DNA of 64,000 bases from Neoechinorhynchus agilis. Taxonomy: Eukaryota; Animalia; Acanthocephala. Location of the stretch: assembly GCA_051530055.1 (NCBI GenBank), contig CM121342.1, positions 1,212,797 to 1,276,796 of the forward strand, in the 5' to 3' direction. The notes under the pieces were generated by a model that saw only the letters and a program-made list of their open reading frames with translations, was not told the DNA's origin and searched no databases. Made by a program: the position numbers and the translations under genes. This document shows positions 35,007 to 62,158 of this stretch, piece by piece (position 1 is the first letter of the stretch; each line of letters opens with the position of its first letter).

Positions 35007-35266
35007 ATTAGATTATAGAGATCAATATCCGACTCCCTTTATCTTCATGCAAAATTATTGCTTACCCAATCGTTAGTAATTCGTTCACGCTGATAAGATA
35101 TCGGCTAACATTGATATCAATTTATACAGTTCACCAATTAGATTATAGAGATCAATATCCGACCGCCTTTATCTTCATGCAAAATTATTGCTTACCCAAT
35201 CGTTAGTAATTCGTTCACGCTGATAAGATATCGGCTAACATTGATATCAATTTATACAGTTCACCA
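35007..35266. repeat. 130-bp tandem duplication (2 copies, ~2 mismatches)
   Basis: attagattatagagatc starts at 35007 and 35137. Confidence 0.92.
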
Positions 35267-35380
35267 AACGCAATGATTTTCACACATCCATTACCGATAA
35301 TAATCATATCAAGATGCTTCGGAATAATAAATATCTAATGGTTTTTGAACATAATCCAGGTTAAAGCATAATCAATTATT

Positions 35381-36952: not shown

Positions 36953-37123
36953 ACCATGTTTGACACTGCCATGTTAAGACATAAATTATAATTCCTAATA
37001 AAACGATTTTTAACAATTGTAAAAGTATTTCGGACGAAGAAGAGGATGCATCGAGACTCCTCACCGTACTGCCCGGAGCAAAGACAACTGCAGCCGACTA
37101 TGCTGACATTCTCGGGTCTCCAA

Positions 37124-40100
37124 AGCCATTGATCCCATCGCAGCCGCAAATAAAACCACAAGTTTCTACTCAAATTCTCGTTTTTTAATACATGATTTTA
37201 AGCGGTAACCAATCAAACTGTCAAAGTTTATAACAGATGTGCAAGTCAAATTGAAAAGTCAGACAAGAACAAATTTACAATAATTATTCCTTTCCGTCGG
37301 CTCCTTTAAGACATCGAACTACTTTTTTTATAGCCATTTTTTAGCATTATCCATATCCTTTATAGACCATTGATGACGGTCCTGATTGAACGTAAATTGA
37401 AAAATTTCATTAAATGAAAATATCGATTATTCTCCCTTTTAAACCTATTTAGTTTGATGTTTGTGATCCTCTATCGCCCTTTTGTCCTTAGCTTCCAATG
37501 TTTTATTGAATTCTATCCATAAAACAGCAACAGCACTATAATATAATCCTTGCAGCATTAAAGAAACAAACGATAATTTCCTCGGCTGTCAAATGAAAAA
37601 TTCAACCTCAAGCCATTGATCCTATCGCAGCCGCAAATAAAACCACAAGTTTCTACTCAAATTCTCGTTTATTAATACATTATTTTAAGCGGTAACCAAT
37701 CAAACTGTCAAAGTTTATAACAGATGTGCAAGTCAAATTGAAAAGTAAGACAAGAACAAGTTTACAATAATTATTCCTTTCCGTCGGCTCCTTTAAGATA
37801 TCGAACTACTTTTTTTATAGCCATTTTTTAGCATTATCCATATCCTTTATAGACCATTGATGACGGTCCTGATTGAACGTAAATTGAAAAATTTCATCAA
37901 ATGAAAATATCGATTGTTCTCCCTTTTCAACCTATTTCATTTGATGTTTGTGATCCTCTATCGCCCTTCTGTCCTTAGCTTCCAATGTTTTATTCAATTC
38001 TATCCATAAAACAGCAACAGCACTATAATATAATCCTTGCAGCATCAAAGAAACAAACGATCATTTCCTCGGCTGTCAAATGAAGAATTCAACTTCAAGC
38101 CATTGATCCTATCGCAGCCGCAAATAAAACCATAAATTTCTACTCAAATTCTCGTTTTTTAATACATGATTTTAAGCAGTAACCAATCAAACTGTAAAAG
38201 TTTATAACAGATGTGCAAGTCAAATTGAAAAGTCTGACAAGAACAAATTTACAATCATTATTCCTTTCCGCCGGCTCCTTTAAGATATCGAACTACATTT
38301 TTTATAGCCATTTTTTAGCATTATCCATATCCTTTATAGACCATTAATGATGGTCTTGATTGAACGTAAATTGAAAAATTTAATTAAATGAAAATATCGA
38401 TTGTTCTCCCTTTTCAACCTATTTCATTTGATGTTTGTGATCCTCATCGCCCTTTTGTCCTTAGCTTCCAATGTTTTATTGAATTCTATCAATAAAACAG
38501 CAACAGCACTATAATATAATCCTTGCAGCATCAAAGAAACAAACGATCATTTCCTCGGCTGTCAAATGAAGAATTCAACTTCAAGCCATTGATCCTATCG
38601 CAACCGCAAATAAAACCATAAGTTTCTACTCAAATTCTCGTTTTTTAATACATGATTTTAAGCGGTAACCAATCAAACTGTCAAAGTTTATAACAGATGT
38701 GCAAGTCAAATTGAAAAGTCAGAAAAGAACAAATTTACAATAATTATTCCTTTCCGTCGGCACCTTTAAGATATCGAACTACTTTTTTCATAGCAATTTT
38801 TTAGCACTATCCATATCCTTTATAGACCATTGATGACGGTCCTGATTGAACGTAAATTGAAAAATTTCGTTAAATAAAAATATCGATTGTTTTCCCTTTT
38901 CAACCTATTTCATTTGATGTTTGTGATCCTCTATCGCCCTTTTGTCCTTAGCTTCCAATGTTTTATTGAATTCTATCCATAAAACAGCAACAGCACTACA
39001 ATATAATCCTTGCAGCATCAAAGAAACAAACGATCATTTCCTCGGCTGTCAAATGAAGAATTCAACTTCAAGCCATTGATCCTATCGCAGCCGCAAATAA
39101 AATCACAAGTTTCTACTCAAATTCTCGTTTTTTAATACATGATTTTAAGCAGTAACCAATCAAACTGTCAAAGTTTATAACAGATGTGCAAGTCAAATTG
39201 AAAAGTCAGACAAGAACAAATTTACAATAATTATTCCTTTCCGCCGGCTCCTTTAAGATATCGAACTACTTTTTTTACAGCAATTTTTTAGCATTATCAT
39301 TATCCCTTATAGACCATTGATGACGGTTCTGATTGAACGTAAATTGAAAAATTTAATTAAATGAAAATATCGATTGTTCTCCCTTTTCAACCTATTTCAT
39401 TTGATGTTTGTGATCCTCTATCGCCCTTTTGTCCTTAGCTTCCAATGTTTTATTGAATTCCATCAATAAAACAGCAACAGCACTATAATATAATCCTTGC
39501 AGCATCAAAGAAACAAACGATCATTTCCTCGGCTGTCAAATAAAGAATTCAACTTCAAGCCATTGATCCTATCGCAGCCGCAAATAAAACCATAAATTTC
39601 TACTCAAATTCTCGTTTTTTAATACATGATTTTAAGCGGTAACCAATCAAACTGTCAAAGTTTATAACAGATGTGCAAGTCAAATTGAAAAGTCAGACAA
39701 GAACAAATTTACAATAATTATTCCTTTCCGTCGGCTCCTTTAAGATATCGAACTACTTTTTTCATAGCAATTTTTTAGCACTATCCATATCCTTTATAGA
39801 CCATTGATGACGGTCCTGATTGAACGTAAATTTAAAAATTTCATTAAATAAAAATATCGACTGTTCTCCCTTTTCAACCTATTTCATTTGATGTTTGTGA
39901 TCCTCTATCGCCCTTTTGTCCTTAGCTTCCAATGTTTTATTCAATTCCATCCATAAAACAGCAACAGCAGTATAATATAATCCTTCCAACATCAAAGAAA
40001 CAAACGATCATTTCCTCGGCTGTCAAATGAAGAATTCAACCTCAAGCCATTGATCCTATCGCAGCAGCAAATAAAACCACAAGTTTCTACTCAAATTCTC

Positions 40101-43100
40101 GTTTTTTTAATACATGATTTTAAGCAGTAACCAATCAAACTGTCAAAGTTTATAACAGATGTGCAAGTCAAATTGAAAAGTCAGACAAGAACAAATTTAC
40201 AATAATTATTCCTTTCCGTCGGCTCCTTTAAGATATCGAACTACTTTTTTTACAGCAATTTTTTAGCATTATCATTATCCCTTATAGACCATTGGATGAC
40301 GGTTCTGATTGAACGTAAATTGAAAAATTTAATTAAATGAAAATATCGACTTTTCTCCCCTTTCAACCTATTTCATTTGATGTTTGTGATCCTCTATCGC
40401 CCTTTTGTCCTTAGCTTCCAATGTTTTATTGAATTCCATCAATAAAACAGCAACAGCACTATAATATAATCCTTGTAGCATCAAAGAAACAAACGATCAT
40501 TTCCTCGGCTGTCAAATAAAGAATTCAACTTCAAGCCATTGATCCTATCGCAGCCGCAAATAAAACCATAAATTTCTACTCAAATTCTCGTTTTTTAATA
40601 CATGATTTTAAGCGGTAACCAATCAAACTGTCAAAGTTTATAACAGATGTGCAAGTCAAATTGAAAAGTCAGACAAGAACAAATTTACAATAATTATTCC
40701 TTTCCGTCGCCTCCTTTAAGATATCGAACTACTTTTTTTATAGCCATTTTTTAGCATTATCCATATCCTTTATAGACCATTGATGACGGTCCTGATTGAA
40801 CGTAAATTGAAAAATTTCCTCAAATGAAAATATCGATTGTTCTCCCTTTTCAACCTATTTCATTTGATGTTTGTGATCCTCTATCGCCTTTCTGTCCTTA
40901 GCTTCCAATGTTTTATTCAATTCTATCCATAAAACAGCAACAGCACTATAATATAATCCTTGCAGCATCAAAGAAACAAACGATCATTTCCTCGGCTGTC
41001 AAATGAAGAATTCAACATCAGGCCATTGATCCTATCGCAGCCGCAAATAAAACCAAAAATTTCTACTCAAATTCTCGTTTTTTAATACATGATTTTTAGC
41101 AGTAACCAATCAAACTGTCAAAGTTTATAACAGATGTGCAAGTCAATTGAAAAGTCAGACAGCAACAAATTTACAATAATTATTCCTTTCCGTCGGCTCC
41201 TTTAAGATATCGAACTACTTTTTTCATAGCAATTTTTTAGCACTATCCATATCCTTTATAGACCATTGATGACGGTCCTATTTGAACGTAAATTGAAAAA
41301 TTTCATTAAATGAAAATATCGATTGTTTTCCCTTTTCAACCTATTTCATTTGATGTTTGTGATCCTCTATCGCCCTTTTGTCCTTAGCTTCCAATGTTTT
41401 ATTCAATTCTATCCATAAAACAGCAACAGCACTATAATATAATCCTTGGTAGTGACCAAAAAGAAACAAAACGATCATTTCCTCGGCTGTCAAATGAAGA
41501 ATTCAACTTCAAGCCATTGATCCTATCGCAGCCGCAAATAAAACCATAAGTTTCTACTCAAATTCTCGTTTTTTAATACATGATTTTAAGTGGTAACCAA
41601 TCAAACTGTCAAAGTTTATAACAGATGTGCAAGTCATATTGAAAAGTCAGACAAGAACAAATTTACAATAATTATTCCTTTCCCTCGGTTCCTTTAAGAT
41701 ATCGAACTACTTTTTTTATAGCCATTTTTTACCATTATCCATATCCTTTATAGACCATTGGTTATGGTCCTGATTGAACGCAAATTGAAAAATTTAACTA
41801 AATGAAAATATCGATTGTTCTCCCTCAGCATCAAAGAAATAAACGATCATTTCCTCGGCAGTCAAATGAAGAATTCAACTTCAAGCCATTGATCCTATCG
41901 CAGCCGCAAATAAAACCATAAATTTCTACTCAAATTCTCGTTTTTTAATACATGATTTTAAGCAGTAACCAATCAGACTGTCAAAGTCTATAACAGATGT
42001 GCAAGTCAATTTGAAAAGTCAGACAAGAACAAATTTACAATAATTATTCCTTTCCGTCGGCTCCTTTAAGATATCGAACTACTTTTTTTATAGCCATTTT
42101 TTAGCATTATCCATATCGTTTATAGACCATTGATGACAGTCCTGATTGAACGTAAATTGAAAAATTTAATTAAATGAAAATATAGATTGTTCTCTTTTTT
42201 CAACCTATTTCATTTGATGTTTGTGATCCTCTATCGCCCTTTTGTCCTTAGCTCTCAATGTTTTATTCAATTCTATCCATAAAACAGCAACAGCACTATA
42301 ATATAATCCTTGCAGCATCAAAGAAACAAACGATCATTTCCTCGGCTGTCAAATGAAGAGTTCAACTTCATGTCATGGATTCTATCGCAGCCGCAAATAA
42401 AACCATAAGTTTCTACTCAAATTTTCGCTTTTTAATACATGATTTTAAGCGGTAACCAATCAAACTGTCAAAGTTTATAACAGATGTGCAAGTCAAATTG
42501 AAATGTCAGACAAGAACAAATTTACAATAATTATTCCTTTCCGTCGGCTCCTTTAAGATATCGAACTACTTTTTTTATAGCCATTTTTTACCATTATCCA
42601 TATTATTTATAGACCATTGATGATGGTCCTGATTGAACGTAAATTGAAAAATTTAACTAAATGAAAATATCGATTGTTCTCCCTCAGCATCAAAGGAACA
42701 AACGATCATTTCCTCGGCTGTCAAATGAAGAATTCAACTTCAAGCCATTGATCCTATCGCAGCCGCAAATAAAACCATAAATTTCTACTCAAATTCTCGT
42801 TTTTTAATACATGATTTTAAGCAGTAACCAATCAAACTGTCAAAGTTTATAACAGATGTGCAAGTCAAATTGAAAAGTCAGACAAGAACAAATTTACAAT
42901 AATTATTCCTTTCCGTCGGCACCTTTAAGATGTCGAACTACATTATTTATAGCCATTTTTTTAGCATTATCCATATCCTTTATAGACCATTGATGATGGT
43001 CCTGATTGAACATAAATTGAAAAATTTAACTAAATGAAAATATCGACTGTTCTCCCTTTTCAACCTATTTCATTTAATGTTTGTGATCCTCTATACCCTT

Positions 43101-44193: not shown

Positions 44194-45416
44194 GAGAATC
44201 CTCGAAAGGAGATTTCAATTTTTTCACAAGTCGTCAATTTTGAATTTCTAAAGTTCGTTATACTGCAACGCTTTTCGTGCTTACTCTGAATGATAGTCGA
44301 TTACGGTATAATTTAACGATGACGTCATCTCCGAATAAAATTCTTTCCGATTTTATACAATACAATAACTGGTTTTCATCCTAATTATTCAGCTTGGGAG
44401 CAATTTCGCTCTGTTCGTCGGTAAAGTGAGCGGTTATGTGGATAGTTTGTGTGGCAAAAGCGTTTACCTGTTTTGCTGCGATTGCCATCACGTTTAAGTT
44501 TGCAAATTTTGATTGTTTTGCCAAGGGACGAAGTATTGTGACTTAATAATTTAGCTCAAAGTTTAAATTCCTTAATGGATGTTTAATAATAATGACACAT
44601 TTTATTCATTTTTCTGTTTAAGAAATTAGACTGATGTACCTTTGGTTTCCGTATTTTTGTTGGTGTGTCCGTTCGGGTCACGATGTCATGCCTGGGGATG
44701 TCCGGTCATTTTGCTTGATCGTTTTGGTTGCTTCGATTTCTATTCTAAAATTTCCAAATCTCAATAAGACAATTCGCTGACGTTGAAGAGCTATTTGTTT
44801 GTTCCGTCAAATTTCCCGTTTTCTCTGTTTGCAACGAAACCCGGTTGATATTTTTCCGACCTGCGATTGGAATCTATGATTTCTTTATGTTTTTTGTTGT
44901 GGCGGCTTTTCTTATTATTGGAGGTTTTTAAATTCACTAATATATTACTTTTCTATTTGAGAAGTTCTGTACTCGGATAATGATTTCCATTTTTAGAAGA
45001 TTGCTCTTGAATCTCGGATCAATTATTCGCTCTTTATAACTTGAGTATCCGCCCCATTTATCTTTAATATTTTTTGAGTTCCTTGGCACGGTAGCTTTGA
45101 GATTTGAACTTTGTTCAGGACGCTGGACAACTTTACTAATTCTACTATTGACATTTTGATGAAGGCTGTTTAAAAATACAAATTCACAACACTGGCATTA
45201 TTCGCGTTCTGCATAAATATTTGCTAGCATCAAATACTTGTTGTTGATAACAATAATATTTTCTGTTTTGCAAGCTATCTCAATTCTTCGTAGATACATT
45301 CACCGACTACTGCCTTTATCTTCGAAGAAAAACGTTGGATGTTCGAGGAACGCTCTCTAATGCTAAATTTTCTGTCGAGCGTTGTTGCGAATAACTTACC
45401 TTATTAAAAATTATTA

Positions 45417-45842
45417 TTGTTTAATTTAACGTCGATTGGACTTTGTATAGCTGATAAAATAATCGGTTATTGTTCAAAGTCAACAAACGATCGAATAGTT
45501 TGTGTCAACGTCGAAATTGGAACTTGTCAAGAAGCAAAGCAATGGAAAGGCACGACTTTTACAACTTTTGCAACACCAATGCTCAACCAAATCTTGGGCA
45601 CCCGCATTCATGTGAAAGCCAGAACCCAATTCCCAGATCAAATCTTACCTCTTGACCGTTCTGATATTGTCGTCGGCCTGGCAGATTCAATTACAATGAA
45701 ACACCTGCCAATATCCGGAGTATCGACTGCAATCAGGGAGGTTATTTGCCTAACAGTTCGGGCTCCTTTTGTGGAACCAAGCACAAAAGATCGCAGTAAC
45801 AACCGCATCCTAGAGCCTCCTCAAAGGGGTTCGACGTCCTAA
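45417..45842 (+). CDS. Questionable 141-codon ORF (TTG start), duplicated at 54966-55391
   Basis: Open in both duplicates (1 nonsynonymous and 1 synonymous difference seen); no recognisable motif; may be a shadow ORF. Confidence 0.25.
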   Translation: MFNLTSIGLCIADKIIGYCSKSTNDRIVCVNVEIGTCQEAKQWKGTTFTTFATPMLNQILGTRIHVKARTQFPDQILPLDRSDIVVGLADSITMKHLPISGVSTAIREVICLTVRAPFVEPSTKDRSNNRILEPPQRGSTS

Positions 45843-45938
45843 ATCCTCATTAGAATATTCTTTACATGGTCAGTTATTAACCGAGGTATTTACACACTGC
45901 AATATCCTCGATCCTTCTATGACGATTAAACGTAGTTG

Positions 45939-48900
45939 TCGTTTCCGAATCGAAATGTATCCTTTCCCGATCATATCGACTAATGATATTGTATTGGAAA
46001 TCCAATATTTCATTACACGGCTCTCTGCTGAAACGACCACGACTCTATTACCGACAATTGCCGCACCGAGACGTCAAATGAGATCGACAGCGTGAGAATC
46101 TTCGAATAACATTAGAATTAAATTATTAAAATCCGATTATAGTAGAAGCCCGGGGCCATTGACTATGTTCGTTCTCTTGGTCATCTTTAAGCCTTTCCAA
46201 TTCATCAATTGAACTGTCCCAACCATCTCTATCTTCTACGTCACCAGTTCCCGCGCTTCGTTTTCGAATGTTCTTTGATCTCGGTGATTTATGTTCGTTC
46301 TCTTCGTCATCTTTCAGGACTCCAAATTCATCAATTGAACTTCCCTAATCGCTTTAATCCTCTTCATCAGCATTTCACGCAGCTCATTTGCGAATTTCAT
46401 TCAATCTCTGTGATTTATATTCGTGCTCGCCGTCATTTTTAAGCGTTCCCAAGGCATCAAATAAACTTCTTCAAGCATCTTGATTATCATCGTCAATTAT
46501 TACTGTGTTTCGTTCTTTGATTCCTTTTATCCTCTGGATTTCATGTTTAGTCCTCGTTTCCGAATCGAAATGTGTCCTTTCCCGATCATATCGACTAATG
46601 ATATTGTATTGGAAATCCAATATTTCATTACACGGCTCTCTGCTGAAACGACCACGACTCTATCACCGACAATTGCCTCACCCAGACGTCAAATGAGAGC
46701 GTCAGCGTGAGAATCTTCGAATAACATTAGAATTAAATTATTAAAATCCGATTATAGTAGAAGCCCGGGGCCATTGACTATGTTCGTTCTCTTGGTCATC
46801 TTTAAGCCTTTCCAATTCATCAATTGAACTGCCCCAACCATCTCTATCTTCTACGTCACCAGTTCCCGCGCTTCGTTTTCGAATGTTCTTTGATCTCGGT
46901 GATTTATGTTCGTTCTCTTCGTCATCTTTCGGAACTCCAAATTCATCAATTGAACTTCCCTAATCGCTTTAATCCTCTTCATCAGCATTTCACGCAGCTC
47001 GTTTGAGAATTTCATTCAATCTCTGTGATTTATATTCGTGCTCGCCGTCATTTTTAAGCGTTCCCAAAGCATCAAATAAACTTCTACAAACGTCTTGATT
47101 ATCATCGTCAAATATTACTGTGTTTCGTTCTTTGATTCGCGCATCCTCTGGTTTCATGTTTAGTCCTCGCATCCGAATCGAAATGTGTCCTTTCCCGATC
47201 ATATCGACTAATGATGTTGTATTGGAAATCGTCTTCATTACACGGCTCTCCAACTCGAGATTTACTCTACACTTCGGTGTCATTTTTAGAAGTTCGCCAC
47301 TCTGCTGAAACGTCCACGACTCTATCACCGACAATTGCTGCAACGGGACGTCAATTGAGATCGCCAGCGTGAGAATCTTCGAATAACATTAGAATTAAAT
47401 TATTAAAATCCGATTATAGTAGAAGCCCGGGGCCATTGACTATGTTCGTTCTCTTGGTCATCTTTAAGCCTTTCCAATTCATCAATTGAACTGCCCCAAC
47501 CATCTCTATCTTCTACGTCACCAGTTCCCGCGCTTCGTTTTCGAATGTTCTTTGATATCGGTGATTTATGTTCGTTCTCTTCGTCATCTTTCAGGACTCC
47601 AAATTCATCAATTGAACTTCCCTAATCGCTATAATCCTCTTCATCATAATTTCACGCAGCTCGTTTGCGAATTTCATTCAATCTCTGTGATTTATATTCG
47701 TGCTCGCCGTCATTTTTAAGCGTTCCCAAGGCATCAAATAAACTTCTTCAAGCATCTTGATTATCATCGTCAATTATTACTGTGTTTCGTTCTTTGATTC
47801 CTTTTATCATCTGGATTTCATGTTTAGTCCCCGTTTCCGAATCGAAATGTGTCCTTTCCCGATCATATCGACTAATGATATTGTATTGGAAATCCAATAT
47901 TTCATTACACGGCTCTCCAACTCGAGATTTACTCTACACTTCGTTGTCATTTTTAGAAGTTCGCCACTCTGCTGAAACGTCCACGACTCTATCACCGACA
48001 ATTACCGCACCGAGACGTCAAATGAGATCGTCAGCGTGAGAATCTTCGAATAACATTAGAATTAAATTATTAAAATCCGATTATAGTAGAAGCCCGGGGC
48101 CATTGACTATGTTCGATCTCTTGGTCATCTTTAAGCCTTTCCAATTCATCAATTGAACTGCCCCAACGATCTCTATCTTCTACGTCAACTGTTCCCGCGC
48201 TTCGTTTTCGAATGTTCTTTGATCTCGGTGATTTATGTTCGTTCTCTTCGTCATCTTTCAGGACTCCAAATTCATCAATTGAACTTCCCTAATCGCTTTA
48301 ATCCTCTTCATCAAAATTTCACGCAGCTCGTTTGCGAATTTCATTCAATCTCTGTGATTTATATTCGTGCTCGCCGTCATTTTTAAGCGTTCCCAAGGCA
48401 TCAAATAAACTTCTTCAAGCATCTTGATTATCATCGTCAACTATTGCTGTGTTTCGTTCTTTGATTCCTTTTATCCTCTTGATTTCATGTTTAGTCCTCG
48501 TTTCCGAATCGAAATGTGTCCTTTCCCGATCATATCGACTAATGATATTGTATTGGAAATCCAATATTTCATTACACGGCTCTCCAACTCGAGATTTACC
48601 CTACACTTCGGTGTCATTTTTAGAAGTTCGCCACTCTGCTGAAACGTCCACGACTCTATCACCGACAATTGCCTCACCCAGACGTCAAATGAGATCGTCA
48701 GCGTGAGAATCTTCGAATAACATTGGAATTAAATTATTAAAATCCGATTATAGTAGAAGCCCGGGGCCATTGACTATGTTCGTTCTCTTGGTCATCTTTA
48801 AGCCTTTCCAATTCATCAATTGAACTGCCCCAACCATCTCTATCTTCTACGTCACCAGTTCCCGCGCTTCGTTTTCGAATGTTCTTTGATCTCGGTGATT

Positions 48901-49826
48901 TATGTTCGTTCTCTTCGTCATCTTTCAGGACTCCAAATTCATCAATTGAACTTCCCTAATCGCTATAATCCTCTTCATCAAAATTTCACGCAGCTCGTTT
49001 GCGAATTTCATTCAATCTCTGTGATTTATATTCGTGCTCGCCGTCATTTTTAAGCGTTCCCAAGGCATCAAATAAACTTCTTCAAGCATCTTGATTATCA
49101 TCGTCAATTATTATTGTGTTTCGTTCCTTGATTCCTTTTATCCTCTGGATTTCATGTTTAGTCCCCGTTTCTGAATCGAAATGTGTCCTTTCCCGATCAT
49201 ATGGACTAATGATATTGTATTGGAAATCCAATATTTCATTACACGGCTCTCCAACTCGAGATTTACTCTACACTTCGGTGTCATTTTTAGAAGTTCGCCA
49301 CTCTGCTGAAACGTCCACGACTCTATCACCGGCAATTGCTGCACCGAGACGTCAAACGAGATCGTCAGCGTGAGAATCTTCGAATAACATTAGAATTAAA
49401 TTATTAAAATCCGATTATAGTAGAAGCCCGGGGCCATTGACTATGTTCGTTCTCTTGGTCATCTTTAAGCCTTTCCAATTCATCAATTGAACTGCCCCAG
49501 CCATCTCTATCTTTTACGTCAACAGTTCCCGCGCTTCGTTTTCGAATGTTCCTTGATCTCGGTGATTTATGTTCGTTCTCTTCGTCATCTTTCAGGACTC
49601 CAAATTCATCATTTGAACTCCCCTAATCGCTTTAATTCTCTTCATCAGCATTTCACGCAGCTCGGTTGCTAATTTCATTCAATCTCTGTGATTTATATTC
49701 GTGCTCGCCGTCATTTTTAAGCGTTCCCAAGGCATCAAATAAACTTCTTTAAGCGTCTTGATTATCATCGTCAACTATTACTGTTTTTCGTTCTTTGATT
49801 CCTTTTATCCTCTGGATTTCATGTTT
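45939..49826 (-). repeat. 667-bp tandem array A (~5.9 units), derived from a coding sequence
   Basis: Marker gaatcttcga at 46096, 46711, 47373, 48040, 48707 and 49374. The leftmost units share a 52-bp deletion. Each unit holds a 217-codon minus-strand fossil frame. Confidence 0.97.
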
Positions 49827-50636
49827 AATCTTAATGAAATATTGTGGTACATTCAAATGGATGTTAAGTAAATAATTAAAAATTGGTCAATGTCTTCATG
49901 ATTAGAGAAAATAAATGTGAGCTCATAAGAAAAATCGATTCAACGGATTGTATGTGATTTTAGTCTTTCAGTCATGTTAGGAAAATGCTTTTTATTTCCA
50001 GAGATAAAGTTATAAATGTCAATAAAAATTTTGTTTGTACTTTTATGCTTAATTTCGCAAAGATCGATTTCATTAAAATTTCAGGCGTAATAGTTCAACC
50101 CTCACAATGTCCAAATTATGACGCAGAAAGACGGAAATTTTGTAGGAAAAAGGTACTGGGTGTTATCCCCGAAAATTTTAGATTAGGAATTCCGATGGCA
50201 ATTTGTTCTAAATTTAAGAAGTTTTAGCCATTGACCCAACATCAAATCAACTGGTAATCGAATCTATTTGTGATGACGATCAACAAAGAAGGGAATATCG
50301 ACGGTGATGTTCTAATTTTTTTATCCGTTCGTCCGATAAACTGTCGAGAGGCATCTTGATTTATGCAAAGCAATGAAAAGATCCTGAAATATTATCATTT
50401 TAGTCAAAAGAAGTTGATGTTGCATTTGCGGAGATGCAAAATTATTACGTTCCGGATCATCTACAAAGGGAAATATTGGCAGTGAAATTCAATTGATTGG
50501 ACTTATTGGTTGATAATCAATATCGATTGGAAATGGGGGAGATTAATGATAGCACCTTTTATTTTGAGAGTGGAAAATACAAGCCACCGGATTAAGCACC
50601 TCGGGTATCAAGATAATCTTGTAAGCTTTGGGTGGG

Positions 50637-51647
50637 TTATTCTATCTTCGTAGCTAATAAACCTTCAGTCGTAAGGTTGTTGTTTTCCGCACTTTCATCC
50701 GAATCGATAAGCATGTTGGCATTTCGAAAGTCGGCATTGGCCGAGCGTGCCACTCGGGATGCTCTGTTGTTGCTGAGTTGCTTGAAGGATTTGGTGAGCT
50801 CCTTATAACTTTGGGGATCCATAGTTGTGCAGGTATGCGAGCAATTTTCTCTAGACAGTTGGGCAAAACGTCCCTTCAAGCGTTGACGGATCATGGCATA
50901 AACCTACACTTCCCTAAGAGTGCATTTTGTTCTTGCCGGGCTGTGAGTATCACGGGTAGCGGCATGGAAGTCGTAGATTTTGGATCTTCTGGTCGTTGTT
51001 GTCGAATCAGTCTTCGAGACGCCTCTTGACGAAGCCGAGTTCCGTCTATGCGGCTGCGCGAACAACGGTTTTCAGGGTGATCCAGTCGGATAGTCGGACA
51101 CAAGATAGTCTTTGTGGTCGAATCAAACTTCCATAGAGGAAACGTCGTGGTTTGGACTTGACATGTTGAGCATTGGGAAGGATTTTGCAAAAACTTCAAT
51201 CCTTCACTCTCGTAATGGCGTAGTCGGGGAGATACCAGTGATCCCAGCTCGGATGTATCCGAGAGGTGGAAAAGGGCATTAGTGATAAATAGTCCATTTT
51301 CGGCACGAGAAATAGATTGCCAATTGCATTTCCTTTTTCAATTTCATGCTTTCCGATGTTCCACGTTTCGTATTTTTACCCGACTCGGGCATTGAAATCG
51401 TCCAGAGTGAGGAGTTTGAGCCAGTTTGTCGGTGTTGAATTCCGATGTTGGTGAGTCTTTGTTTAATGTCACGGACGACGGTGCTCCTGATAACAAAATC
51501 AACTCGCCTGATAGCTTCGTAATCTCATTTGGGTCAAGTTTCTCTCATCTTAGACCTTAAAATAATTCTCAAATTTGCCAAATCATCATTCGTATTATTG
51601 TAGTCATCGAAATTCCTCTTTGAAGCTTCATGAAATTCTGTTGTCAT
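50637..51647 (-). pseudogene. Disrupted or unresolved multi-exon gene with a GATA-type zinc-finger-like segment
   Basis: CSTC-x20(QVQTTTFPLWKFDSTTKTIL)-CPTI resembles GATA C-x2-C-x17-20-C-x2-C with the PLW motif, but the 4th Cys is missing. Frameshifts and an in-frame TAG separate the pieces; candidate ATG at 51647. Confidence 0.35.
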
Positions 51648-51690
51648 AGCGATCGAAACGCAATCGTAAAGATTTAACTCTTTAGATCAG

Positions 51691-52533
51691 ATGTACTGTG
51701 ATCAGATTATTGAGGGAAAATTAGTCCTCTGCCCTTGGGATATCGACGAATTGACCAAGATTTTATTGGAAGCTCCACAAGAGACATCGAAGATTGTCAT
51801 ATTCGTGAAAGGTTATTCTGTAATATCTCAAATAGTCATTCGAGATCTAAAGACGCCTGTAATAATTTGCGTCGATGTAGAAATAGTACGCGAGGCTACT
51901 AAGAAGTTCCATATAAAGAAGTTTCCAACTGTTGTTTCGATGTGCTGCGGTAGAGAAACTGCCCGTTTCACAGGAATGAAACCTCGCCCGTATTATGAAA
52001 GATTTCTTAATGAGTATTTCAGGAAATCAAATGTATGTGCACCACACAATGTAATCGAAATCACGGTCATGTCCATGATTACTAATCTTATGGACGATCT
52101 AAGTTCAAAAAAACCATTACTTGTCGTTGATTTCTACTCTGATTGGTGCCAATTCTGCTCAATGATGAGTGTTGTTCTTGAAGATTTGTCCATCGAACGG
52201 CAAGATGTTATGTTCTGTAAATTGAATGTTGATTTACCTCTGGGTTCTCTAATGGCCAAAAAGCTCGGCATTTTTTCTCTACCAACCATCGATCTAATTA
52301 CCAATAGGAGTCTAATGCCTAAGGGAAAAAATTTACGTATTCTTCGCTTCCCGGGAAAAGAAGTCCCTTATGTTAGGGTAGCGAGCCGCACTGGATATCA
52401 AACGAAGGCTGAGTTAAGTTCATGCATCGACGAGGCAATTGAACAGATTCGGAATAGGAGCAAAATTGGTAGATTAGTTTGTAACGTGATGCGTTCCTTT
52501 GAAAGACTAAGTGTCTGGTTGTCACATAAATAA
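51691..52533 (+). CDS. 280-aa protein with two thioredoxin folds (second has WCQFC)
   Basis: LLVVDFYSDWCQFC..FCKLNVD..LGIFSLPT is a canonical Trx layout. The N-terminal domain (..KKFHIKKFPTVV..ETARFTG) is Trx-like without CxxC. Confidence 0.88.
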   Translation: MYCDQIIEGKLVLCPWDIDELTKILLEAPQETSKIVIFVKGYSVISQIVIRDLKTPVIICVDVEIVREATKKFHIKKFPTVVSMCCGRETARFTGMKPRPYYERFLNEYFRKSNVCAPHNVIEITVMSMITNLMDDLSSKKPLLVVDFYSDWCQFCSMMSVVLEDLSIERQDVMFCKLNVDLPLGSLMAKKLGIFSLPTIDLITNRSLMPKGKNLRILRFPGKEVPYVRVASRTGYQTKAELSSCIDEAIEQIRNRSKIGRLVCNVMRSFERLSVWLSHK

Positions 52534-53899
52534 ACTTCCATTCTTTGTTCGTCTATAATTTCGGTTCTTAAATATTACTGGCAAGCCGGTTCTATTATCG
52601 GTGTTGCTTCATGCCAATAAGGAAAACTAAAAAGCCGAGTAAGGGATGTAATAATCTGAATTTAATTTTAATTCTTATATTAAGCTACAGCCTGTAATTA
52701 CTGCTCGTTCATTTGCTCCAATGGGTGCATTTTCCATCAAATTCACTTTGATTATTTAATTTCCGAAAGTTTAGTTTGACGAACATCCAGGAAATAAAGA
52801 CCTGCTTCTCGGAATGTAAAAAGTGCCATTCCACTTCCGCTTTTCAAACATAGGATCTCTACAATGATCGTGAAATAAAAGTTAATAATTGCCGTAAAAA
52901 TTTCATTAGCGTACATGGGGATTCGAAGCTCGAACGAAATTTGTTTTGGAACAGATTGAATACTGTTAATCTATGCGAATTTTTGTCTCCGATCGTGGAA
53001 AATAGCAGTTGCCAAAGTTATATTCAAAGGTTAGAAGATGACGAACACATTAGAATGTGCTAAAAAGCTTTCTTCTAATTCGAAAGCTTTCAATTTAAGG
53101 ACTATGTAAGCAAAGCTTATATAAAATTTTATCTATCCGTGGCCGACTGATTTCTGTTTTAGTTCATTGAAAGATATTGAATGATATTCGATTTCCTTTC
53201 ACTGTAGTGTAATCTCTTAAAAAATTTAACCCCATTTTAAAGCACGCGTAGAACGCCTTTATTTAAAAATCCCTCTATGGAATCGGAAATTTCGATAAAA
53301 ACATTGGCGAAGTATTTCACGTTTTACGAATTTCAATGACAATGATTATGCGAGATTAAAAGTTAGGACTCTATTAACATTAAGTATTTACACGAATTGT
53401 GTTTTTCCGATAAAGTTTGATCCTGCAAAAAATGCACTTCCCTTCTTGTTGTATTCTTTTATTTTAAACAACATTTAAAAAAACTCTAATTGAATTATTC
53501 GGTATTTTGTGGTAGCTTTTAAGCATTGTTTGCAAAAATATTTTTTTCGTTATATTGCATTTTTAGAGATCACTGCTCAAATCGCAGTTAAATCGCTTTC
53601 TTGATTTTTAATTGGTTACACATTTGTCACGTTTTTATGGCTACGAATAGGCGTTTATCTAAGCGATTAATGTTAAATTGCCCATTATTTTTTTATAACG
53701 TTTTTCGATTGTTTGGCACGGCGTTCTGTGCTTATGTGTGAAATTGAGCAAATATTATTTCGTTTCATGATCTTGGTCATTTAACTATGCTGAGATGGTT
53801 AAATGCGAATTTAGAACATGTCGAGAATTAAAAGAGGTTCAAACAATTAAAACGTTAACAAATGTGTGTGCAAGCACTGGAACATGCGATTTGCCGGTG

Positions 53900-56800
53900 G
53901 TTTTTGTGGTGGCTTTTCTTATTATTGGAGACGATCGCATGACTTACAATGTAATGATTTTGATTGCAACTGATCACCTTTGTGAACTTCTATCCCTTTA
54001 TAGTCGACACTGCAAGGCATTTTACTTGCTTCAACATGAATCTCGTTTGCTTTTCTTAACATCTTTTTAAATTCACTAATATATTACTTTTCTATTTGAG
54101 AAGTTCTGTACTCGGATAATGATTTCCATTTTTAGAAGATTGCTCTTGAATCTCGGATCAATTATTCGCTCTTTATAACTTGAGTATCCGCCCCATTTAT
54201 CTTTAATATTTTTTGAGTTCCTTGGCACGGTAGCTTTGAGATTTGAACTTTGTTCAGGACGCTGGACAACTTTACTAATTCTACTATTGACATTTTGATG
54301 AAGGCTGTTTAAAAATACGAATGCTGATTGTTTAGACTTCTCCTATTAAAATGATCATCAATTTGATTATTATTAAATAGTCGCTTCCGACTAAGTATTG
54401 ATAAGGGTTCTTGTATTTCTTAATCTCGTAATTGGATTGACGGGAACGAGATAGATGCAAGGTTGTACGTCTTGTCATTGGAGCCGTACTTATCCTTCTG
54501 CTTTGTTCTCGAACTACGTCAACTCTTTGTGCCATAGCCTTGAGGTTGCCTTGCTTCATATAATCCTTGACTTTGGAAAGCTAGAAAATCGGATTAAAAT
54601 TGATTTATTTTCCTAACTTCAAATTTCTACGTTTATTAGAAAAAAATATATTAAAATCAAAAATAATTGAAAACCTATTAGCTAACAAGACGCTTAAAAG
54701 CTGTCAAAATATTGATATTTGTCGCAACAAATTCACAACACTGGCATTATTCGCGTTCTGCATAAATATTTGCTAGCATCAAATACTTGTTGTTGATAAC
54801 AATAATATTTTCTGTTTTGCAAGCTATCTCAATTCTTCGTAGATACATTCACCGACTACTGCCTTTATCTTCGAAGAAAAACGATGGATGTTCGAGGAAC
54901 GCTCTCTAATGCTAAATTTTCTGTCGAGCGTTGTTGCGAATAACTTACCTTATTAAAAATTATTATTGTTTAATTTAACGTCGATTGGACTTTGTATAGC
55001 TGATAAAATAATCGGTTATTGTTCAAAGTCAACAAACGATCGAATAGCTTGTGTCAACGTCGAAATTGGAACTTGTCAAGAAGCAAAGCAATGGAAAGGC
55101 ACGACTTTTACAACTTTTGCAACACCAATGCTCAACCAAATCTTGGGCACCCGCATTCATGTGAAAGCAAGAACCCAATTCCCAGATCAAATCTTACCTC
55201 TTGACCGTTCTGATATTGTCGTCGGCCTGGCAGATTCAATTACAATGAAACACCTGCCAATATCCGGAGTATCGACTGCAATCAGGGAGGTTATTTGCCT
55301 AACAGTTCGGGCTCCTTTTGTGGAACCAAGCACAAAAGATCGCAGTAACAACCGCATCCTAGAGCCTCCTCAAAGGGGTTCGACGTCCTAAATCCTCATT
55401 AGAATATTCTTTACATGGTCAGTTATTAACCGAGGTATTTACACACTGCAATATCCTCGATCCTTCTATGACGATTAAACGTAGTTGTCGTTTCCGAATC
55501 GAAATGTATCCTTTCCCGATCATATCGACTAATGATATTGTATTGGAAATCCAATATTTCATTACACGGCTCTCTGCTGAAACGACCACGACTCAATTAC
55601 CGACAATTGCCGCACCGAGACGTCAAATGAGATCGTCAGCGTGAGAATCTTCGAATAACATTAGAATTAAATTATTAAAATCCGACTATAGTAGAAGCCC
55701 GGGGCCATTGACTATGTTCGTTCTCTTCGTCATCTTTAAGCCTTTCCAATTCATCAATTGAACTGCCCCAACCATCTCTATCTTCTACGTCAACAGTTCC
55801 CGCGCTTCGTTTTCGAATGTTCCTTGATCTCGGTGATTTATGTTCGTTCTCTTCGTCATCTTTCAGGACTCCAAATTCATCAATTGAACTTCCCTAATCG
55901 CTATAATCCTCTTCATCAGCATTTCACGCAGCTCGTTTGCGAATTTCATTCAATCTCTATGATTTATATTCGTGCTCGCCGTCATTTTTAAGCGTTCCCA
56001 AGGCATCAAATAAACTTCTTCAAGCATCTTGATTATCATCGTCAATTATTACTGTGTTTCGTTCTTTGATTCCCTTTATCCTCTGGATTTCATGTTTAGT
56101 CCTCGTTTCCGAATCGAAATGTGTCCTTTCCCGATCATATCGACTAATGATATTGTATTGGAAATCCAATATTTCATTACACGGCTCTCCAACTCGAGAT
56201 TTACTCTACACTTCGGTGTCATTTTTAGAATTTCGCCACTCTGCTGAAACGTCCACGACTCTATCACCGACAATTGCTGCACCGAGACGTCAAACGAGAT
56301 CGTCAGCGTGAGAATCTTCGAATAACATTAGAATTAAATTATTAAAATCCGATTATAGTAGAAGCCCGGGGCCATTGACTATGTTCGTTCTCTTGGTCAT
56401 CTTTAAGCTCTTCAATCATCAATCGAAACTCGCCCCAGCCACCTCTATCTTTACGCCGGCCAGCTCCCGCGCTTCGTTTTCGAAACGTTCCTTGATCTCG
56501 GTGATTTATGTTCGTTCTCTTCGTCATCTTTCAGACTCAAATTCATCAATTGAACTTCCCTAATCGCTTAAATCCTTTCATCTGCATTTCACGCAGCTCG
56601 TTTGCGAATTTCCGTTCAATCTCTGTGATTTATATTCGTGCTGTCATTTTTAAGCGTTCCTAAGGCATCAAATAAACTTCTTCAAGCGTCTTGATTATCA
56701 ATCATTACTGTGTTTCGTTCTTTGATTCCTTTTATCCTCTGGATTTCATGTTTAGTCCCCGTTTCCGAATCGAAATGTGTCCTTTAGCGATCATATCGAC

Positions 56801-59800
56801 TAATGATATTGTATTGGAAATCCAATATTTCATTACACGGCTCTCCAACTCGAGATTTACACTACACTTCGGTGTCATTTTTAGAAGTTCGCCACTCTGC
56901 TGAAACGTCCACCACTCTATCACCGACAATTGCTGCACCGAGACGTCAAACGAGATCGTCAGCGTGAGAATCTTCGAATAACATTAGAATTAAATTATTA
57001 AAATAGGATTATAGTAGAAGCCCGGGGCCATTGACTATGTTCGTTTTCTTGGTCATCTTTAAGCCTTTCCAATTCATCAATTGAACTGCCCCAACCATCT
57101 CTATCTTTTACGTCAACAGTTCCCGCGCTTCGTTTTCGAATGTTCTTTGATCTCGGTGATTTATGTTCGTTCTCTTCGTCATCTTTCAGGACTCTAAATT
57201 CATCAATTGAACTTCATTAATCGCTTTAATCCTCTTCATCTGCATTTCACGCAGCTCGTTTGCGAATTTCATTCAATCTCTGTGATTTATATTCGTGCTC
57301 GCCGTCATTTTTAAGCGTTCCCAAGGCATCAAATAAACTTCTTCAAGCGTCTTGATTATCATCGTCAACTATTACTGTGTTTCGTTCTTTGATTCTTTTT
57401 ATCCTCTTTTCATGTTTAGTCCTCGTTTCCGAACTGAAACGTGCCCTTTCCCGATCATATCGATCATCGATATTGTATTGGAAATCCAAACATTTCATTA
57501 CACGGCACTCCAACTCGAGATTTACTCTACACTTCGGTGTCATTTTTAGAAGTTCGCCACTCTGCTGAAACGTCCACGACTCTATCACCGACAATTGCTG
57601 CACCGAGACGTCAAATGAGATCGTCAGCGTGAGAATCTTCGACTAACATTAGAATTAAATTATTAAAATCCGATTATGGTAGAAGCCCGGGGCCATTGAC
57701 TATGTTCGTTTTCTTGGTCATCTTTAAGCCTTTCCAATTCATCAATTGAACTGCCCCAACCACCTCTATCTTCTACGTCAACAGTTCCCGCGCTTCGTTT
57801 TCGAATGTTCTTTGATCTCGGTGATTTATGTTCGTTCTCTTCGTCATCTTTCAGGACTCTAAATTCATCAATTGAACTTCCCTAATCGCTTTAATCCTTT
57901 TCATCTGCATTTCACGCAGCTCGTTTGCGAATTTCATTCAATCTCTGTGATTTATATTCGTGCTCGCCGTCATTTTTAAGCGTTCCCAAGGCATCAAATA
58001 AACTTCTTCAAGCGTCTTGATTATCATCGTCAACTATTACTGTGTTTCGTTCTTTGATTCCTTTTATCCTCTGGACTTCATGTTTAGTCCTCGTTTCCGA
58101 ATCGAAATGTGTCAATTCCCGATCATATCGACTAATGATATTGTATTGGAAATTCAATATTTCATTACACGGCTCTCCAACTCGAGATTTACTCTACACT
58201 TCGGTGTCCTTTTTAGAAGTTCGCCACTCTGCTGAAACGTCCACGACTCTATCACCGACAATTGCTGCACCGAGACGTCAAACGAGATCGTCAGCGTGAG
58301 AATCTTCGAATAACATTAGAATTAAATTATTAAAATCCGATTATAGTAGAAGCCCGGGGCCATTGACTATGTTCGTTCTCTTGGTCATCTTTAAGCCTTT
58401 CCAATTCATCAATTGAACTGCCCCAGCCATCTATTTCTTTTACGTCAACAGTTCCCGCGCTTCGTTTTCGAATGTTCCTTGATCTCGGTGATTTATGTTG
58501 GTTCTCTTCGTCATCTTTCAGGACTCCAAATTCATCAATTGAACTTCCCTAATCGCTATAATCCTCTTCATCTGCATTTCACGCAGCTCGTTTGCGAATT
58601 TCATTCAATCTCTGTGATTTATATTCGTGCTCGCCGTCATTTTTAAGCGTTCCCAAGGCATCAAATAAACTTCTTCAAGCGTCCTGATTATCATCTTCAA
58701 CTATTACTGTGTTTCGTTCTTTGATTCCTTTTATCCTCTGGATTTCATGTTTAGTCCTCGTTTCCGAATCGAAATGTGCCTTTCCTCGATCATATCGATT
58801 TCATCGATATTGTATTGGAAATCCAATATTTCATTACACGGTTCTCCAACTCGAGATTTACTCTACACTTCGGTGTCATTTTTAGAAGTTCGCCACTCTG
58901 CTGAAACGTCCGCGACTCTATCACCGACAATTGCCTCACCCAGACGTCAAATGAGATCGTCAGCGTGAGAATCTTCGAATAACATTAGAATTAAATTATT
59001 AAAATCCGCTGATTATGGTGAAGCTCGGGGCCATTGACTATGTCGTTCTCTTTGTCATCTTTAAGCCTTTCCCAATTCATCAATTGAACTGCCTCAACCA
59101 TCTCTATCATCTACGTCAACAGTTCCCGCGCTTCGTTTTCGAATGTTCTTTGATCTCGGTGATTTATGTTCGTTCTCTTCGTCATCTTTCAGATCAAATT
59201 CATCAATTGAACTTCCCTAATCGCTTTAATCTCTTCATCTGCATTTCACGCAGCTCGTTTGCGAATTTCATTCAATCTCTGTGATTTATGTTCGTGCTCG
59301 CCGCCATTTTTAAGCGTTCCCAAGGCATCAAATAAACTTCTTCAAGCGTCTTGATTATCATCGTCAACTATTACTGTGTTTCGTTCTTTGATTCCTTTTA
59401 TCCTCTTGATTTCATGTTTAGTCCTCGTTTCCGAATCGAAATGTGCCCTTTCCCGATCATATCGACTAATGATATCGTATTGGAAATCCAATATTTCATT
59501 ACACGGCTCTCCAACTCGAGATTTACTCTACACTTCGGTGTCATTTTTAGAAGTTCGCCACTCTGCTGAAACGTCCACGACTCTATCACCGACAATTGCT
59601 GCACCGAGACGTCAAACGAGATCGTCAGCGTGAGAATCTTCGAATAACATTAGAATTAAATTATTAAAATCCGATTATGGTAGAAGCCCGGGGCCATTGA
59701 CTATGTTCGTTCTGTTGGTCATCTTTAAGCCTTTCCAATTCATCAATTGAACTTCCCCAGCAATCTCTATCTTTTACGTCAACAGTTCCCGCGCTTCGTT

Positions 59801-62150
59801 TTCGAATGTTCTTTGATCTCGGTGATTTATGTTCGTTCTCTTCGTCATCTTTCAGGACTCCAAATTCATCAATTGAACTTCCCTAATCGCTATAATCCTC
59901 TTCATCAGCATTTCACGCAGCTCGTTTGCGAATTTCATTCAATCTCTGTGATTTATATTCGTGCTCGCCGTCATTTTTAAGCGTTCCCAAGGCATCAAAT
60001 AAACTTCTTCAAGCATCTTGATTATATCGTCAATTATTACTGTGTTTCGTTCTTTGATTCCTTTTATCCTCTGGATTTCATGTTTAGTCCTCGTTTCTGA
60101 ATCGAAATGTGTCCTATCTCGACCATATCGACTAATGATATTGTATTGCAAATCCAACATTTGATTACACGGTTCTCAAACTCGAGATTTATTCAATACT
60201 TCGGTGTCATTTTTAGAAGTTCGCAACACTGCTGAAACGTCCACGACTCTATCATGGACTATTGCCTCATCGAGACGTCAAACGAGATCGTCAGCGTGAG
60301 AATCTTCGAATAACATTAGAAATAAATTATTAAAATCCGATTATAGTAGAAGCTCGGGGCCATTGACTATGTTCGTTCTCTTTGTCATCTTTTAAGCCTT
60401 CACCCATCAATTGAACTGCCCCAGCCATCTCTATCTTTTACGTCAACAGTTCCCGCGCTTCGTTTTCGAATGTTCCTTGATCTCGGTGATTTATGTTCGT
60501 TCTCTTCGTCATCTTTCAGGACTCCAAATTCATCAATTGAACTTCCCTAATCGCCTTAATCCTCTTCATCTGCATTTCACGCAGCTCGTTTGCGAATTTC
60601 ATTCAATCTCTGTGATTTATATTCGTGCTCGCCGTCATTTTAAAGCGTTCCCAAGGCATCAATAAACTTCTTCGTCTTGATTATCATCGTCAATTATTAC
60701 TGTGTTTCGTTCTTTGATTCTCTTTATCCTCTGGATTCTGGCGTTTGGGTCCTCGTTTCCGAATCGAAATGTGTCCTTTCCGATCATATCGACTAATGAT
60801 ATTGTATTGGAAATCCAATATTTCATTACACGGCTCTCCAACTCGAGATTTACTCTACACTTCGGTGTCATTTTTAGAAGTTGGCCACTCTGCTGAAACG
60901 TCCACCACTCTATCACCGACAATTGCTGCACCGAGACGTCAAACGAGATCGTCAGCGTGAGAATCTTCGAATAACATTAGAATTAAATTATTAAAATAGG
61001 ATTATAGTAGAAGCCCGGGGCCATTGACTATGTTCGTTTTCTTGGTCATCTTTAAGCCTTTCCAATTCATCAATTGAACTGCCCCAACCATCTCTATCTT
61101 CTACGTCAACAGTTCCCGCGCTTCGTTTTCGAATGTTCCTTGATCTCGGTGATTTATGTTCGTTCTCTTCGTCATCTTTCAGGACTCCAAATTCATCAAT
61201 TGAACTTCCCTAATCGCTTTAATCCTCTTCATCAAAATTTCACGCAGCTCGTTTGCGAATTTCTAATCTTAATGAAATATTGTGGTAAATTCAAATGGAT
61301 GTTAAGTAAATAATTAAAAATTAGTCCATATCATCATGATTAGAGAAAACAAATGTGAGCTCATAAGAAAAATCGATTCAACGGATTGCATGGGATTTTA
61401 GTCTTTCAGTCATGTTATGAATATGCTTTTTATTTCTAGAGATAAAGTTATAAATGTCAATAAAAATTTTGTTTGTACTTTTATGCCTAATTTCGCAAAG
61501 ATCGATTTCATTAAAATTTCAGGTGTAATAGTTCAAATCTCACAATGTCCAAATTATGACGCGGAAAGACGGAAATTTTGCAGGAAAAAGGTACTGGGTG
61601 TTATCCCCGAAAATTTTAGATTAGGAATTCCGATGGCAATTTGCTCTAAATTTAAGAAGTTTTAGCCATTGACCCAACATCAAATCAACTGTTAATCGAA
61701 TCTATTTGTGATGACGATCAACAAAAAAGCGATTATCGATGGTGATGTTCTAATTTTTGTCCGTTCGGAAGATTAGCTGTCGAGAGGCATCTTGATTTAT
61801 GCAAAGCAATGAAAAGATCCTGAAATATTATCATTCTAGTCAAAAGAAGTTGATGTTGCATTTGCGGAGATGCAAAATTATTACGTTCCGGATCATCTAC
61901 AAAGGGAAATATTGGCAGTGAAATTCAATTGATTGGACTTATTGGTTTATAATCAATATCGATTGGAAATGAGGGAGATTAATGATAGCCCCTTTTATTT
62001 TGAGAGTGGAAAATACAAGCCACCGGATTAAGCACCTCGGGTATCAAGATAATCTTGTAAGCGTTGGGTGGGTTATTCTATCTTCGTAGCTGATAAACCT
62101 TCAGTCGTAAGGTTGTTGTTTTCCGCACTTTCATCCGAATCGATAAGCAT
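53900..62150. repeat. Segmental duplication, copy B
   Basis: See copy A; ends at ..gaatcgataagcat (62150), inside the 3' end of the 50637-type frame. Confidence 0.95.
55488..61262 (-). repeat. 667-bp tandem array B (~8.7 units)
   Basis: Marker at 55645, 56312, 56968, 57633, 58300, 58969, 59634, 60300 and 60961 (spacings 656-669). Confidence 0.97.
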
Positions 62151-62158
62151 TTGGACGT

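Follow-up and report, generated by a model that had tools for sequence, protein, structure and literature searches.

The DNA considered here is a 64-kb window of the genome of the acanthocephalan Neoechinorhynchus agilis (CM121342.1:1,212,797-1,276,796, forward strand), i.e., the whole stretch that was analysed, and all coordinates refer to it unless a locus is named; locus L001 (CM121342.1:1254487-1275329) corresponds to window positions 41691-62533. Comparisons at the DNA level covered the window and the loci retrieved from the 46-Mb genome. The subject is a 667-bp tandem repeat, which was mapped with Tandem Repeats Finder (TRF) and by BLAST of one of its units (48723-48070) against the window. 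Both methods placed it in two separate head-to-tail arrays with minus-strand sense, about 15 units in total, which occupy ~10 kb (Table 1). An earlier note on this DNA, made from the letters alone, had described a 667-bp satellite forming one array at 45939-61262; the period was right, whereas the single array turned out to be two, with 5.65 kb of non-satellite DNA between them.

Thirteen full and several partial units were found, and they follow one another head to tail at a mutual identity of 92-98%, as a tandem repeat should. If block 1 is read in the phase in which its units were duplicated, its length is exactly 6 x 667 less the known deletions (52 + 52 + 5 nucleotides (nt)); read from ATG to TAA, it holds 5 full and two partial units, with a 52-nt deletion in the two 3′-most ones. 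In block 2, a deletion of ~150 nt has truncated the 5′-most unit where it borders on the upstream flank, which block 1 also has. Both blocks lie, together with their flanks, in a duplicated segment, the two copies of which (5.8 and 8.1 kb) are 99.6% identical in the left flanks and 95.7% identical in the right flanks. A unit-by-unit comparison between the two blocks gave no clear positional orthology.

Table 1. Positions of the satellite, its parts, its surroundings and the related genes (window coordinates unless a locus is named; a dot stands for a feature without strand).
Feature	Position	Strand	Description
Array block 1	45934..49826	-	Six 667-bp units in true duplication phase (monomer nt 244-667 + 1-243)
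Array block 2	55483..61263	-	About 8.7 units; 3′ breakpoint as in block 1
Gene-derived part, representative unit	48070..48493	-	Monomer nt 244-667 (codons 78-217 + TAA); QRIKGI..NT segment, ~3.3 diverged 126-bp subrepeats, C-terminal end, stop; stops 3-6
Non-gene part, representative unit	48494..48736	-	Monomer nt 1-243; 13-nt spacer, ATG (48723-48721), codons 1-77, stops 1-2
Internal 126-bp subrepeats, one unit	48108..48388	-	TRF, 2.2 copies, 76% matches; same structure in every unit
Block 1 3′ flank	45479..45933	-	Contiguous with the last partial unit; 87% identity with L004 10809-11357
Upstream-flank end still aligning to parent-type genes	49827..49843	-	Last roughly 13-17 nt
Duplicated segment, copy 1	44925..50719	.	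Block 1 and both flanks
Duplicated segment, copy 2	54064..62154	.	Block 2 and flanks; 404-bp insertion 54323-54726
Inter-array non-satellite DNA	49831..55481	.	Holds ACOME3_004888 and the 128-aa gene model
128-aa gene model	50595-51029	+	Between the arrays
Thioredoxin-like gene ACOME3_004888	51691-52533	+	Between the arrays; Pfam Thioredoxin, E 1.7e-14
Gene model ACOME3_004889 (KAL7669943.1), 66 aa	56998..57217	-	Inside block 2, in the ATG-to-TAA frame; 19-nt "intron" skips a stop; reconstructed exactly
Second gene model, 113 aa	57343..57742	-	Spans a unit junction in block 2
ACOME3_005090, 70 aa			Fragment; profile match E 2.9e-17
ACOME3_010578, 374 aa			Gene; profile match E 2.4e-10
ACOME3_006325, 477 aa			Gene; profile match E 2.4e-6
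Third paralogue	L002 19974-21185

Read on the minus strand, unit 48723-48070 opens with an ATG and runs for 217 codons to a TAA with 6 internal stops, and a 13-nt spacer, TAATTTAATTC(T/C)A, which opens with a second TAA, separates it from the next ATG. The earlier note had reported this frame, and had added that most of the stops are common to nearly all units and that a few are open in individual copies. The alignment of the units bore out all of this, as the open variants are real: stop 5 reads TAT instead of TAA in five units, a TGA reads TGT in unit 46741-47402, and a TAG reads TTG in unit 59664-60329. Every unit contains 5-7 internal stops. The estimate that ~15 stops would be expected per frame was likewise a good one, since 5000 dinucleotide-preserving shuffles gave 14.3 +/- 3.5, but the poverty in stops that had been taken as a signal did not survive as such; the probability that one given frame has no more than seven stops was 0.019, and for the best of three frames it was 0.069, which is not significant. 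What distinguishes the consensus is the distribution of stops among its frames, with 34, 7 and 9 in the three minus-strand frames and 10, 6 and 9 in those of the plus strand. One frame absorbs 34 of them, and this leads to a strong three-base periodicity. The base-by-phase chi2 of a unit, 41-43, is the highest in the window (background median 7.5), and genuine exons lie below it, with 34 for a voltage-gated K+ (Kv) channel exon and 31 for an open reading frame (ORF) resembling a cyclic-nucleotide (cNMP)-binding domain. The periodicity comes chiefly from monomer nt 245-667 (chi2 29.3, the top 0.3% of the background); the chi2 of nt 14-244, 13.2, is reached by 8% of background windows and is not significant alone.

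The consensus translation had no match in Pfam, and a word-indexed protein search with the X-masked consensus returned nothing at E<=1. The latter result is unreliable, because the search also missed the array's own 66-aa product, which is 97% identical and present in the collection, and which an exhaustive search recovered at E 2.5e-40. The exhaustive search was carried out with HMMER against 1.84 billion representatives, and its profile was built on 11 units from a piece of 72 aa that is free of stops. The accepted matches were all from N. agilis, i.e., the proteins ACOME3_005090, ACOME3_010578 and ACOME3_006325, as well as the model that lies in the array itself. Two of the six profile matches were to bacterial surface-repeat proteins, which match on composition or repeats and were rejected as spurious. 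The homology to the protein-coding genes is colinear and significant (nhmmer E 1e-27; BLASTP of the whole consensus versus ACOME3_010578, 2e-22), and it reaches outside the query of the profile, where monomer EIQRIKGIKERNTVII and EPQRIKGITKQNTATV of the genes align over 65 nt (81.5% identity). Between monomer and genes, the repeats show an identity of about 70% across 220-230 nt, and the order of the QRIKGI segment, the 42-aa repeats and the C-terminal end is the same in both.

The proteins of this family are 370-477 aa long and consist of an N-terminal region of ~240 aa and, after it, acidic/basic repeats of 126 bp (42 aa) that keep the frame, of which L002 11100-11694 has 4.7 copies (89%). 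The N-terminal exons of three paralogues are open, and ungapped codon blocks gave ratios of nonsynonymous to synonymous substitution (dN/dS) of 0.22-0.37 (binomial p 0.0002-0.035), i.e., constraint acts on the proteins of the family, or did so until recently. It has no relatives in Pfam or PDB, and with no homologues outside N. agilis in the search of 1.84 billion representatives, it appears to be lineage-specific; it also evolves fast. The earlier note had proposed a search of the genome for an intact parent gene. Apparently intact homologues do exist in the same genome, with a qualification due to frame defects that are taken up below; besides ACOME3_010578 and ACOME3_006325, a third paralogue is homologous to the monomer. 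It may be added that ACOME3_010578 (L002 10001-11845) ends at a stop inside the 126-bp repeats, while its frame remains open for ~190 more codons that are annotated separately as a 140-aa gene, and that a one-base frame problem near L002 10322 is bridged by a short "intron"; either the gene is decaying or the assembly is in error here.

The match to the genes covers monomer residues 78-207 (about 130 residues) and corresponds to the C-terminal part of the proteins only. Each unit contains about 2.2-3.3 diverged 126-bp (42-codon) subrepeats, which are ~74% identical within the monomer, compared with 92-98% for whole units. Stops 3-6 (TGA, TGA, TAA and TAG) lie opposite TGG (W), GGA (G), AGA or GAA, and TGG (W), respectively, when aligned with sister subrepeat B and with the genes, and each of them is one base away from the aligned sense codon. 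Relative to the parent frame, the units are disabled by these four shared stops, and 7 of the 13 full units are also frameshifted. Monomer nt 1-243, with the ATG, codons 1-77 and stops 1-2, had no match in the gene loci. They are found again at locus L004, on the same chromosome at a distance of 0.94 Mb, where a stretch 90% identical to them (L004 10704-10901) directly follows the end of a unit (monomer 620-667, including TTTTAATAA) in single copy, and where the module then enters a flank that matches the 3′ flank of the arrays in the window at 87% identity. The 3′ flank of block 1 being common to L004, it would have been part of an ancestral module; the upstream flank of the arrays is not common to L004.

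The breakpoints can be read to the base (a slash marks the break). The upstream flank passes into the array at ...CATTAAGATT/AAACATGAAATCC, one unit passes into the next at ...GAGGACT/AAACATGAAATCC, the tandem-duplication junction being GAGGACT/AAACATG, the array passes into its downstream flank at ...GACAACT/ACGTTTAATCG, and at L004 the sequence is ...GAGGACT/ACGTTGAATCG. The monomer position at which block 1 starts is consequently also the one at which it ends. Together with L004, the breakpoints indicate that the amplified segment was nt 244-667 followed by nt 1-243, i.e., the 3′ fragment of a gene and the 243 nt after its stop, and L004 has the structure that the un-amplified (n = 1) state would be expected to have. 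In the upstream direction, the similarity to the genes ends 13 nt beyond the array, and no remnants of the N-terminal part of the parent were detected upstream of the arrays, even at E = 10, which indicates that the progenitor locus was already a 3′ gene fragment.

Two further observations were made at L004. Unit 59664-60329 and L004 10704-10901 have 5′ variants in common that are absent from the other units (RLDEAIVHD, AVLRTS and EVLNKSRV*EPCNQMLDLQ, where the asterisk is a stop), including the open TTG at stop 2; these are either retained ancestral states or the result of gene conversion across 0.94 Mb. In addition, the single-copy satellite module is flanked by two 1.5-kb direct duplicates (L004 3007-4522 and 17861-19371), ~14.9 kb apart and 96.6% identical, each of which holds a 246-bp x2 repeat and a gene model of ~235 aa.

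From the sequence comparisons as a whole, the 667-bp satellite is, with a probability of about 0.8, the amplified and dead 3′ end of a lineage-specific gene together with the DNA just downstream of it. The series of events would have begun with a 3′ fragment of a family member (the QRIKGI segment, ~3.3 repeats and the stop) at a locus with its downstream DNA. A 667-bp piece, made up of the gene fragment and 243 nt of downstream sequence, would then have been duplicated in tandem, which would have created the junction between the units, and the copies would have been amplified by unequal exchange (crossing-over) or by slippage. A later local duplication of the array and its flanks would have led to the two blocks. 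The four stops in the gene-derived part would have arisen by single-base changes; insertions and deletions shift the frame in half of the units, and the copies drift neutrally. The ATG-to-TAA frame would be a by-product of these events. Its last 140 codons would have inherited the old reading frame, which makes them the source of the periodicity, and its first 77 would derive from DNA that was once downstream and is stop-poor by chance. Since the duplication junction lies inside the frame, where codon 77 meets codon 78, the ATG, and the completeness of the frame from ATG to TAA, would be incidental. The proposal of the earlier note, that a pseudogenised coding segment had been amplified in tandem, is thereby upheld by the homology and the periodicity, whereas its complete ATG-to-TAA fossil is not, as only codons 78-207 match genes.

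The present state of the units was assessed from their substitutions. The comparison of codon positions among units, which had been suggested earlier as a check, revealed 50/58/54 variable columns at the three positions, i.e., no position bias. Synonymous changes numbered 39, against 42.1 in the neutral expectation, and there were 8 gains and 4 losses of stops; the copies are neutral, while the parent family shows the constraint described above. Differences by codon position were 11/14/13 among subrepeats A/B/C and 3/8/9 between the monomer and L004 (nt 48-245), and with no excess at third positions, there is no sign of past selection in either comparison. A variant genetic code gave no help, because TGA, TAG and TAA all occur in the frame, and the exons of the window are open under the standard code without consistent gain under the alternatives. 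The neutral drift, the indels that shift the frame in 7/13 full units, the unit length of 667 bp, which is not a multiple of three, and the lack of a helpful code make read-through, recoding or a functional gene array very unlikely, and the units presumably have no function at present.

That the units might still be expressed, via read-through, a variant code, editing, tiny introns or polycistronic trans-spliced transcripts, could be argued from the two sense-strand gene models within block 2, one of which is in the ATG-to-TAA frame, and from the use of RNA-seq hints in the BRAKER annotation. However, ACOME3_004889 requires a 19-nt intron and covers one unit only, an AG acceptor is missing from the 13-nt spacer, and ORFs in other parts of the window do not become longer under any alternative code. 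The earlier note had rated read-through or editing as the less likely course, and the frameshifted units and neutral substitutions are in line with this; continued expression is very hard to credit. ACOME3_004889 is probably an ab initio annotation artefact of the coding-like composition, and both models inside the satellite are probably spurious. Little more can be said for a purine-rich satellite that has a stop-poor frame by chance, with no coding ancestry at all. The insignificant stop count (five of the six frames have 6-10 stops) and the negative results from Pfam and the first protein search would agree with it, but that search had missed the array's own product, the exhaustive one found homologues that were confirmed in the DNA, even for a segment outside the query, the phase periodicity equals that of real exons, and the stops are one step away from sense codons in paralogues. 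For nt 244-667, chance is already refuted, and for the monomer as a whole it is barely conceivable. The unrelated 487-bp satellite that neighbours the arrays (37123-42194; ~9.6 copies, 95% identity, with an overlapping 372-bp period at 41460-42194) serves as a comparison here, since it has a strong negative GC skew and a codon-phase chi2 of only about 5-13, i.e., no periodicity.

A complete small gene of 217 codons, pseudogenised and amplified whole, would account for a frame that extends from an ATG 13 nt past the previous stop to a double TAA, and for the periodicity of the whole unit in a single register. It is nevertheless highly improbable, as the homologues are 370-477 aa long and match codons 78-207 with their C-terminal part only, codons 1-77 find no counterpart in the gene loci and stand after the unit stop in L004, with the junction between codons 77 and 78, and nt 14-244 have 0 stops in the +1 frame versus 2 in the ATG-to-TAA frame. 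An internal tandem array of a transposable element (TE) that had captured a gene fragment, with transposition dispersing three copies, is just as doubtful. The module (gene fragment, nt 1-243 and ~450 nt of flank) is indeed present at three loci on one chromosome, but there are no terminal inverted or direct repeats (including long terminal repeats) at the ends of the duplicated segments, the ORFs of the flanks have no match to a transposase or any other Pfam family, and L004 lacks the upstream flank. Slightly less remote, though still improbable, is the reverse direction, in which a 126-bp non-coding repeat came first and was exonised by the genes, the 667-bp satellite being the older relative. 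No outgroup polarises the change, and the family evolves fast and lacks homologues outside N. agilis. On the other hand, besides the repeats the monomer has the non-repeated QRIKGI..NT segment and a C-terminal end, arranged as they are in the genes, its stops sit at sense codons of the genes and sister subrepeats, and 126 bp is a multiple of three, with the repeat in frame in every member of the family.

Several points, besides the want of an outgroup, weigh against the derivation of the satellite from a gene 3′ end. L004 is itself degenerate, and the exact parent copy, i.e., an intact gene with nt 1-243 after its stop, was not found in the window or the retrieved loci. Gene A has a premature stop within the repeats and a 1-nt frame problem, and gene B loses its frame in the repeats, so that "intact parent" has to be understood with this qualification. 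Some periodicity is present in nt 14-244, in register with the rest, and one frame there is stop-free over 83 codons; nt 1-243 might therefore have an unrecognised coding ancestry. The alternative open frame (nt 14-263) has no Pfam or PDB relatives. Finally, the assembly is of the hybrid type, built by MaSuRCA from the Illumina and Nanopore R9.4 reads of pooled worms, and the copy number of the array and some of the indels may be assembly errors; the stops that are common to all units are unaffected by this caveat.

Tandem arrays with coding content are known from other systems. The macrosatellites D4Z4/DUX4 and RS447/USP17 have units of 3-5 kb with intact and expressed ORFs. The N. agilis units resemble them in that each seems to hold a frame from start to stop, but this frame is a chimera interrupted by 6 stops, and it evolves by neutral drift. 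No intact ORF is conserved among the units, which show 5-7 stops, frameshifts and no codon-position bias, and because of this the array does not qualify as an ORF-bearing macrosatellite. With tandemly duplicated fragments of unprocessed pseudogenes it shares the paralogous homology, the disabling mutations, the neutral pattern and the local duplication with its breakpoints, while its 6 and 9 head-to-tail copies and their concerted similarity are satellite-like. In makeup the array is a fragment of an unprocessed pseudogene that was amplified in tandem, and it behaves like a small satellite. Any sequence can act as the seed of a satellite, ribosomal DNA (rDNA) spacers and transposable elements being examples, and satellites often grow from shorter subrepeats (PMC5615363). 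The absorption of a 126-bp repeat into a longer homogenisation unit of 667 bp follows the latter pattern, but unlike the rDNA-spacer or TE-seeded satellites, the seed here would be a coding minisatellite from the 3′-terminal part of a gene together with the sequence downstream.

Another comparison is with the Su(Ste)/crystal and Stellate system of Drosophila melanogaster, where hundreds of Y-linked Su(Ste) units give rise to antisense transcripts and PIWI-interacting RNAs (piRNAs) that silence Stellate (PMC7874207, PMC13643785). Both cases have degenerate tandem units that are homologous to a coding family of the same genome, and in both, protein coding is no longer needed; the Su(Ste) units are longer, however, and number in the hundreds, whereas there are ~15 units of 667 bp here, each composed of a gene 3′ end and downstream DNA, and they are known from sequence alone. 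N. agilis possesses PIWI proteins and ping-pong piRNAs, and small-RNA data have been published (PMC12256650). By analogy, the arrays could conceivably be a source of piRNAs or small interfering RNAs that regulate ACOME3_010578, ACOME3_006325 and their relatives, although the chance of this is slim. If it were true, a gene-targeting piRNA cluster would have been born from the 3′ end of the gene itself, in a syndermatan parasite.

It is rare that a satellite can be followed back to its origin with single-base precision, and in this case the putative seed, the exact junction, the single-copy (n = 1) state and the later segmental duplication are all visible. The locus may thus serve as a teaching example of how a coding minisatellite could turn into a longer-period non-coding satellite, and the inherited codon periodicity, combined with the chimera across the junction, would explain why the satellite looks like an ORF. 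At a practical level, two probably spurious N. agilis gene models (ACOME3_004889 and its neighbour) are flagged and an orphan family of repeat proteins is described; no general principle is changed.

The remainder of the window and of the retrieved loci yielded a number of minor observations. Scans of the window with Rfam and for tRNAs found nothing. Between the arrays, the thioredoxin-like ORF is uninterrupted over 280 aa, as compared with the 257 aa of the annotated ACOME3_004888 (92% identity), which implies that a stretch of open frame is removed as an intron in the annotation; an exact look-up of the 280-aa sequence accordingly found no record. An ORF at 31002-32042 on the minus strand has a weak match to a cyclic-nucleotide-binding domain (25.7 bits, below the Pfam cut-off). 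A 91-bp tandem repeat at L002 4749-7369 (28.9 copies, 86% matches) has higher-order periods of 271 and 362 bp and falls between the ends of a PBC-homeobox gene model. Small tandem duplications, each of 97-98% identity, occur in the window at 17295-17540 (96 bp x2.6), 28360-28468 (55 bp x2) and 35007-35267 (130 bp x2). A Shaw-type voltage-gated K+ channel (Ion_trans, E 2.6e-38) has a large exon on the plus strand at 10552-11520, and this exon is 100% identical to ACOME3_004878 on the 16.4-Mb chromosome.

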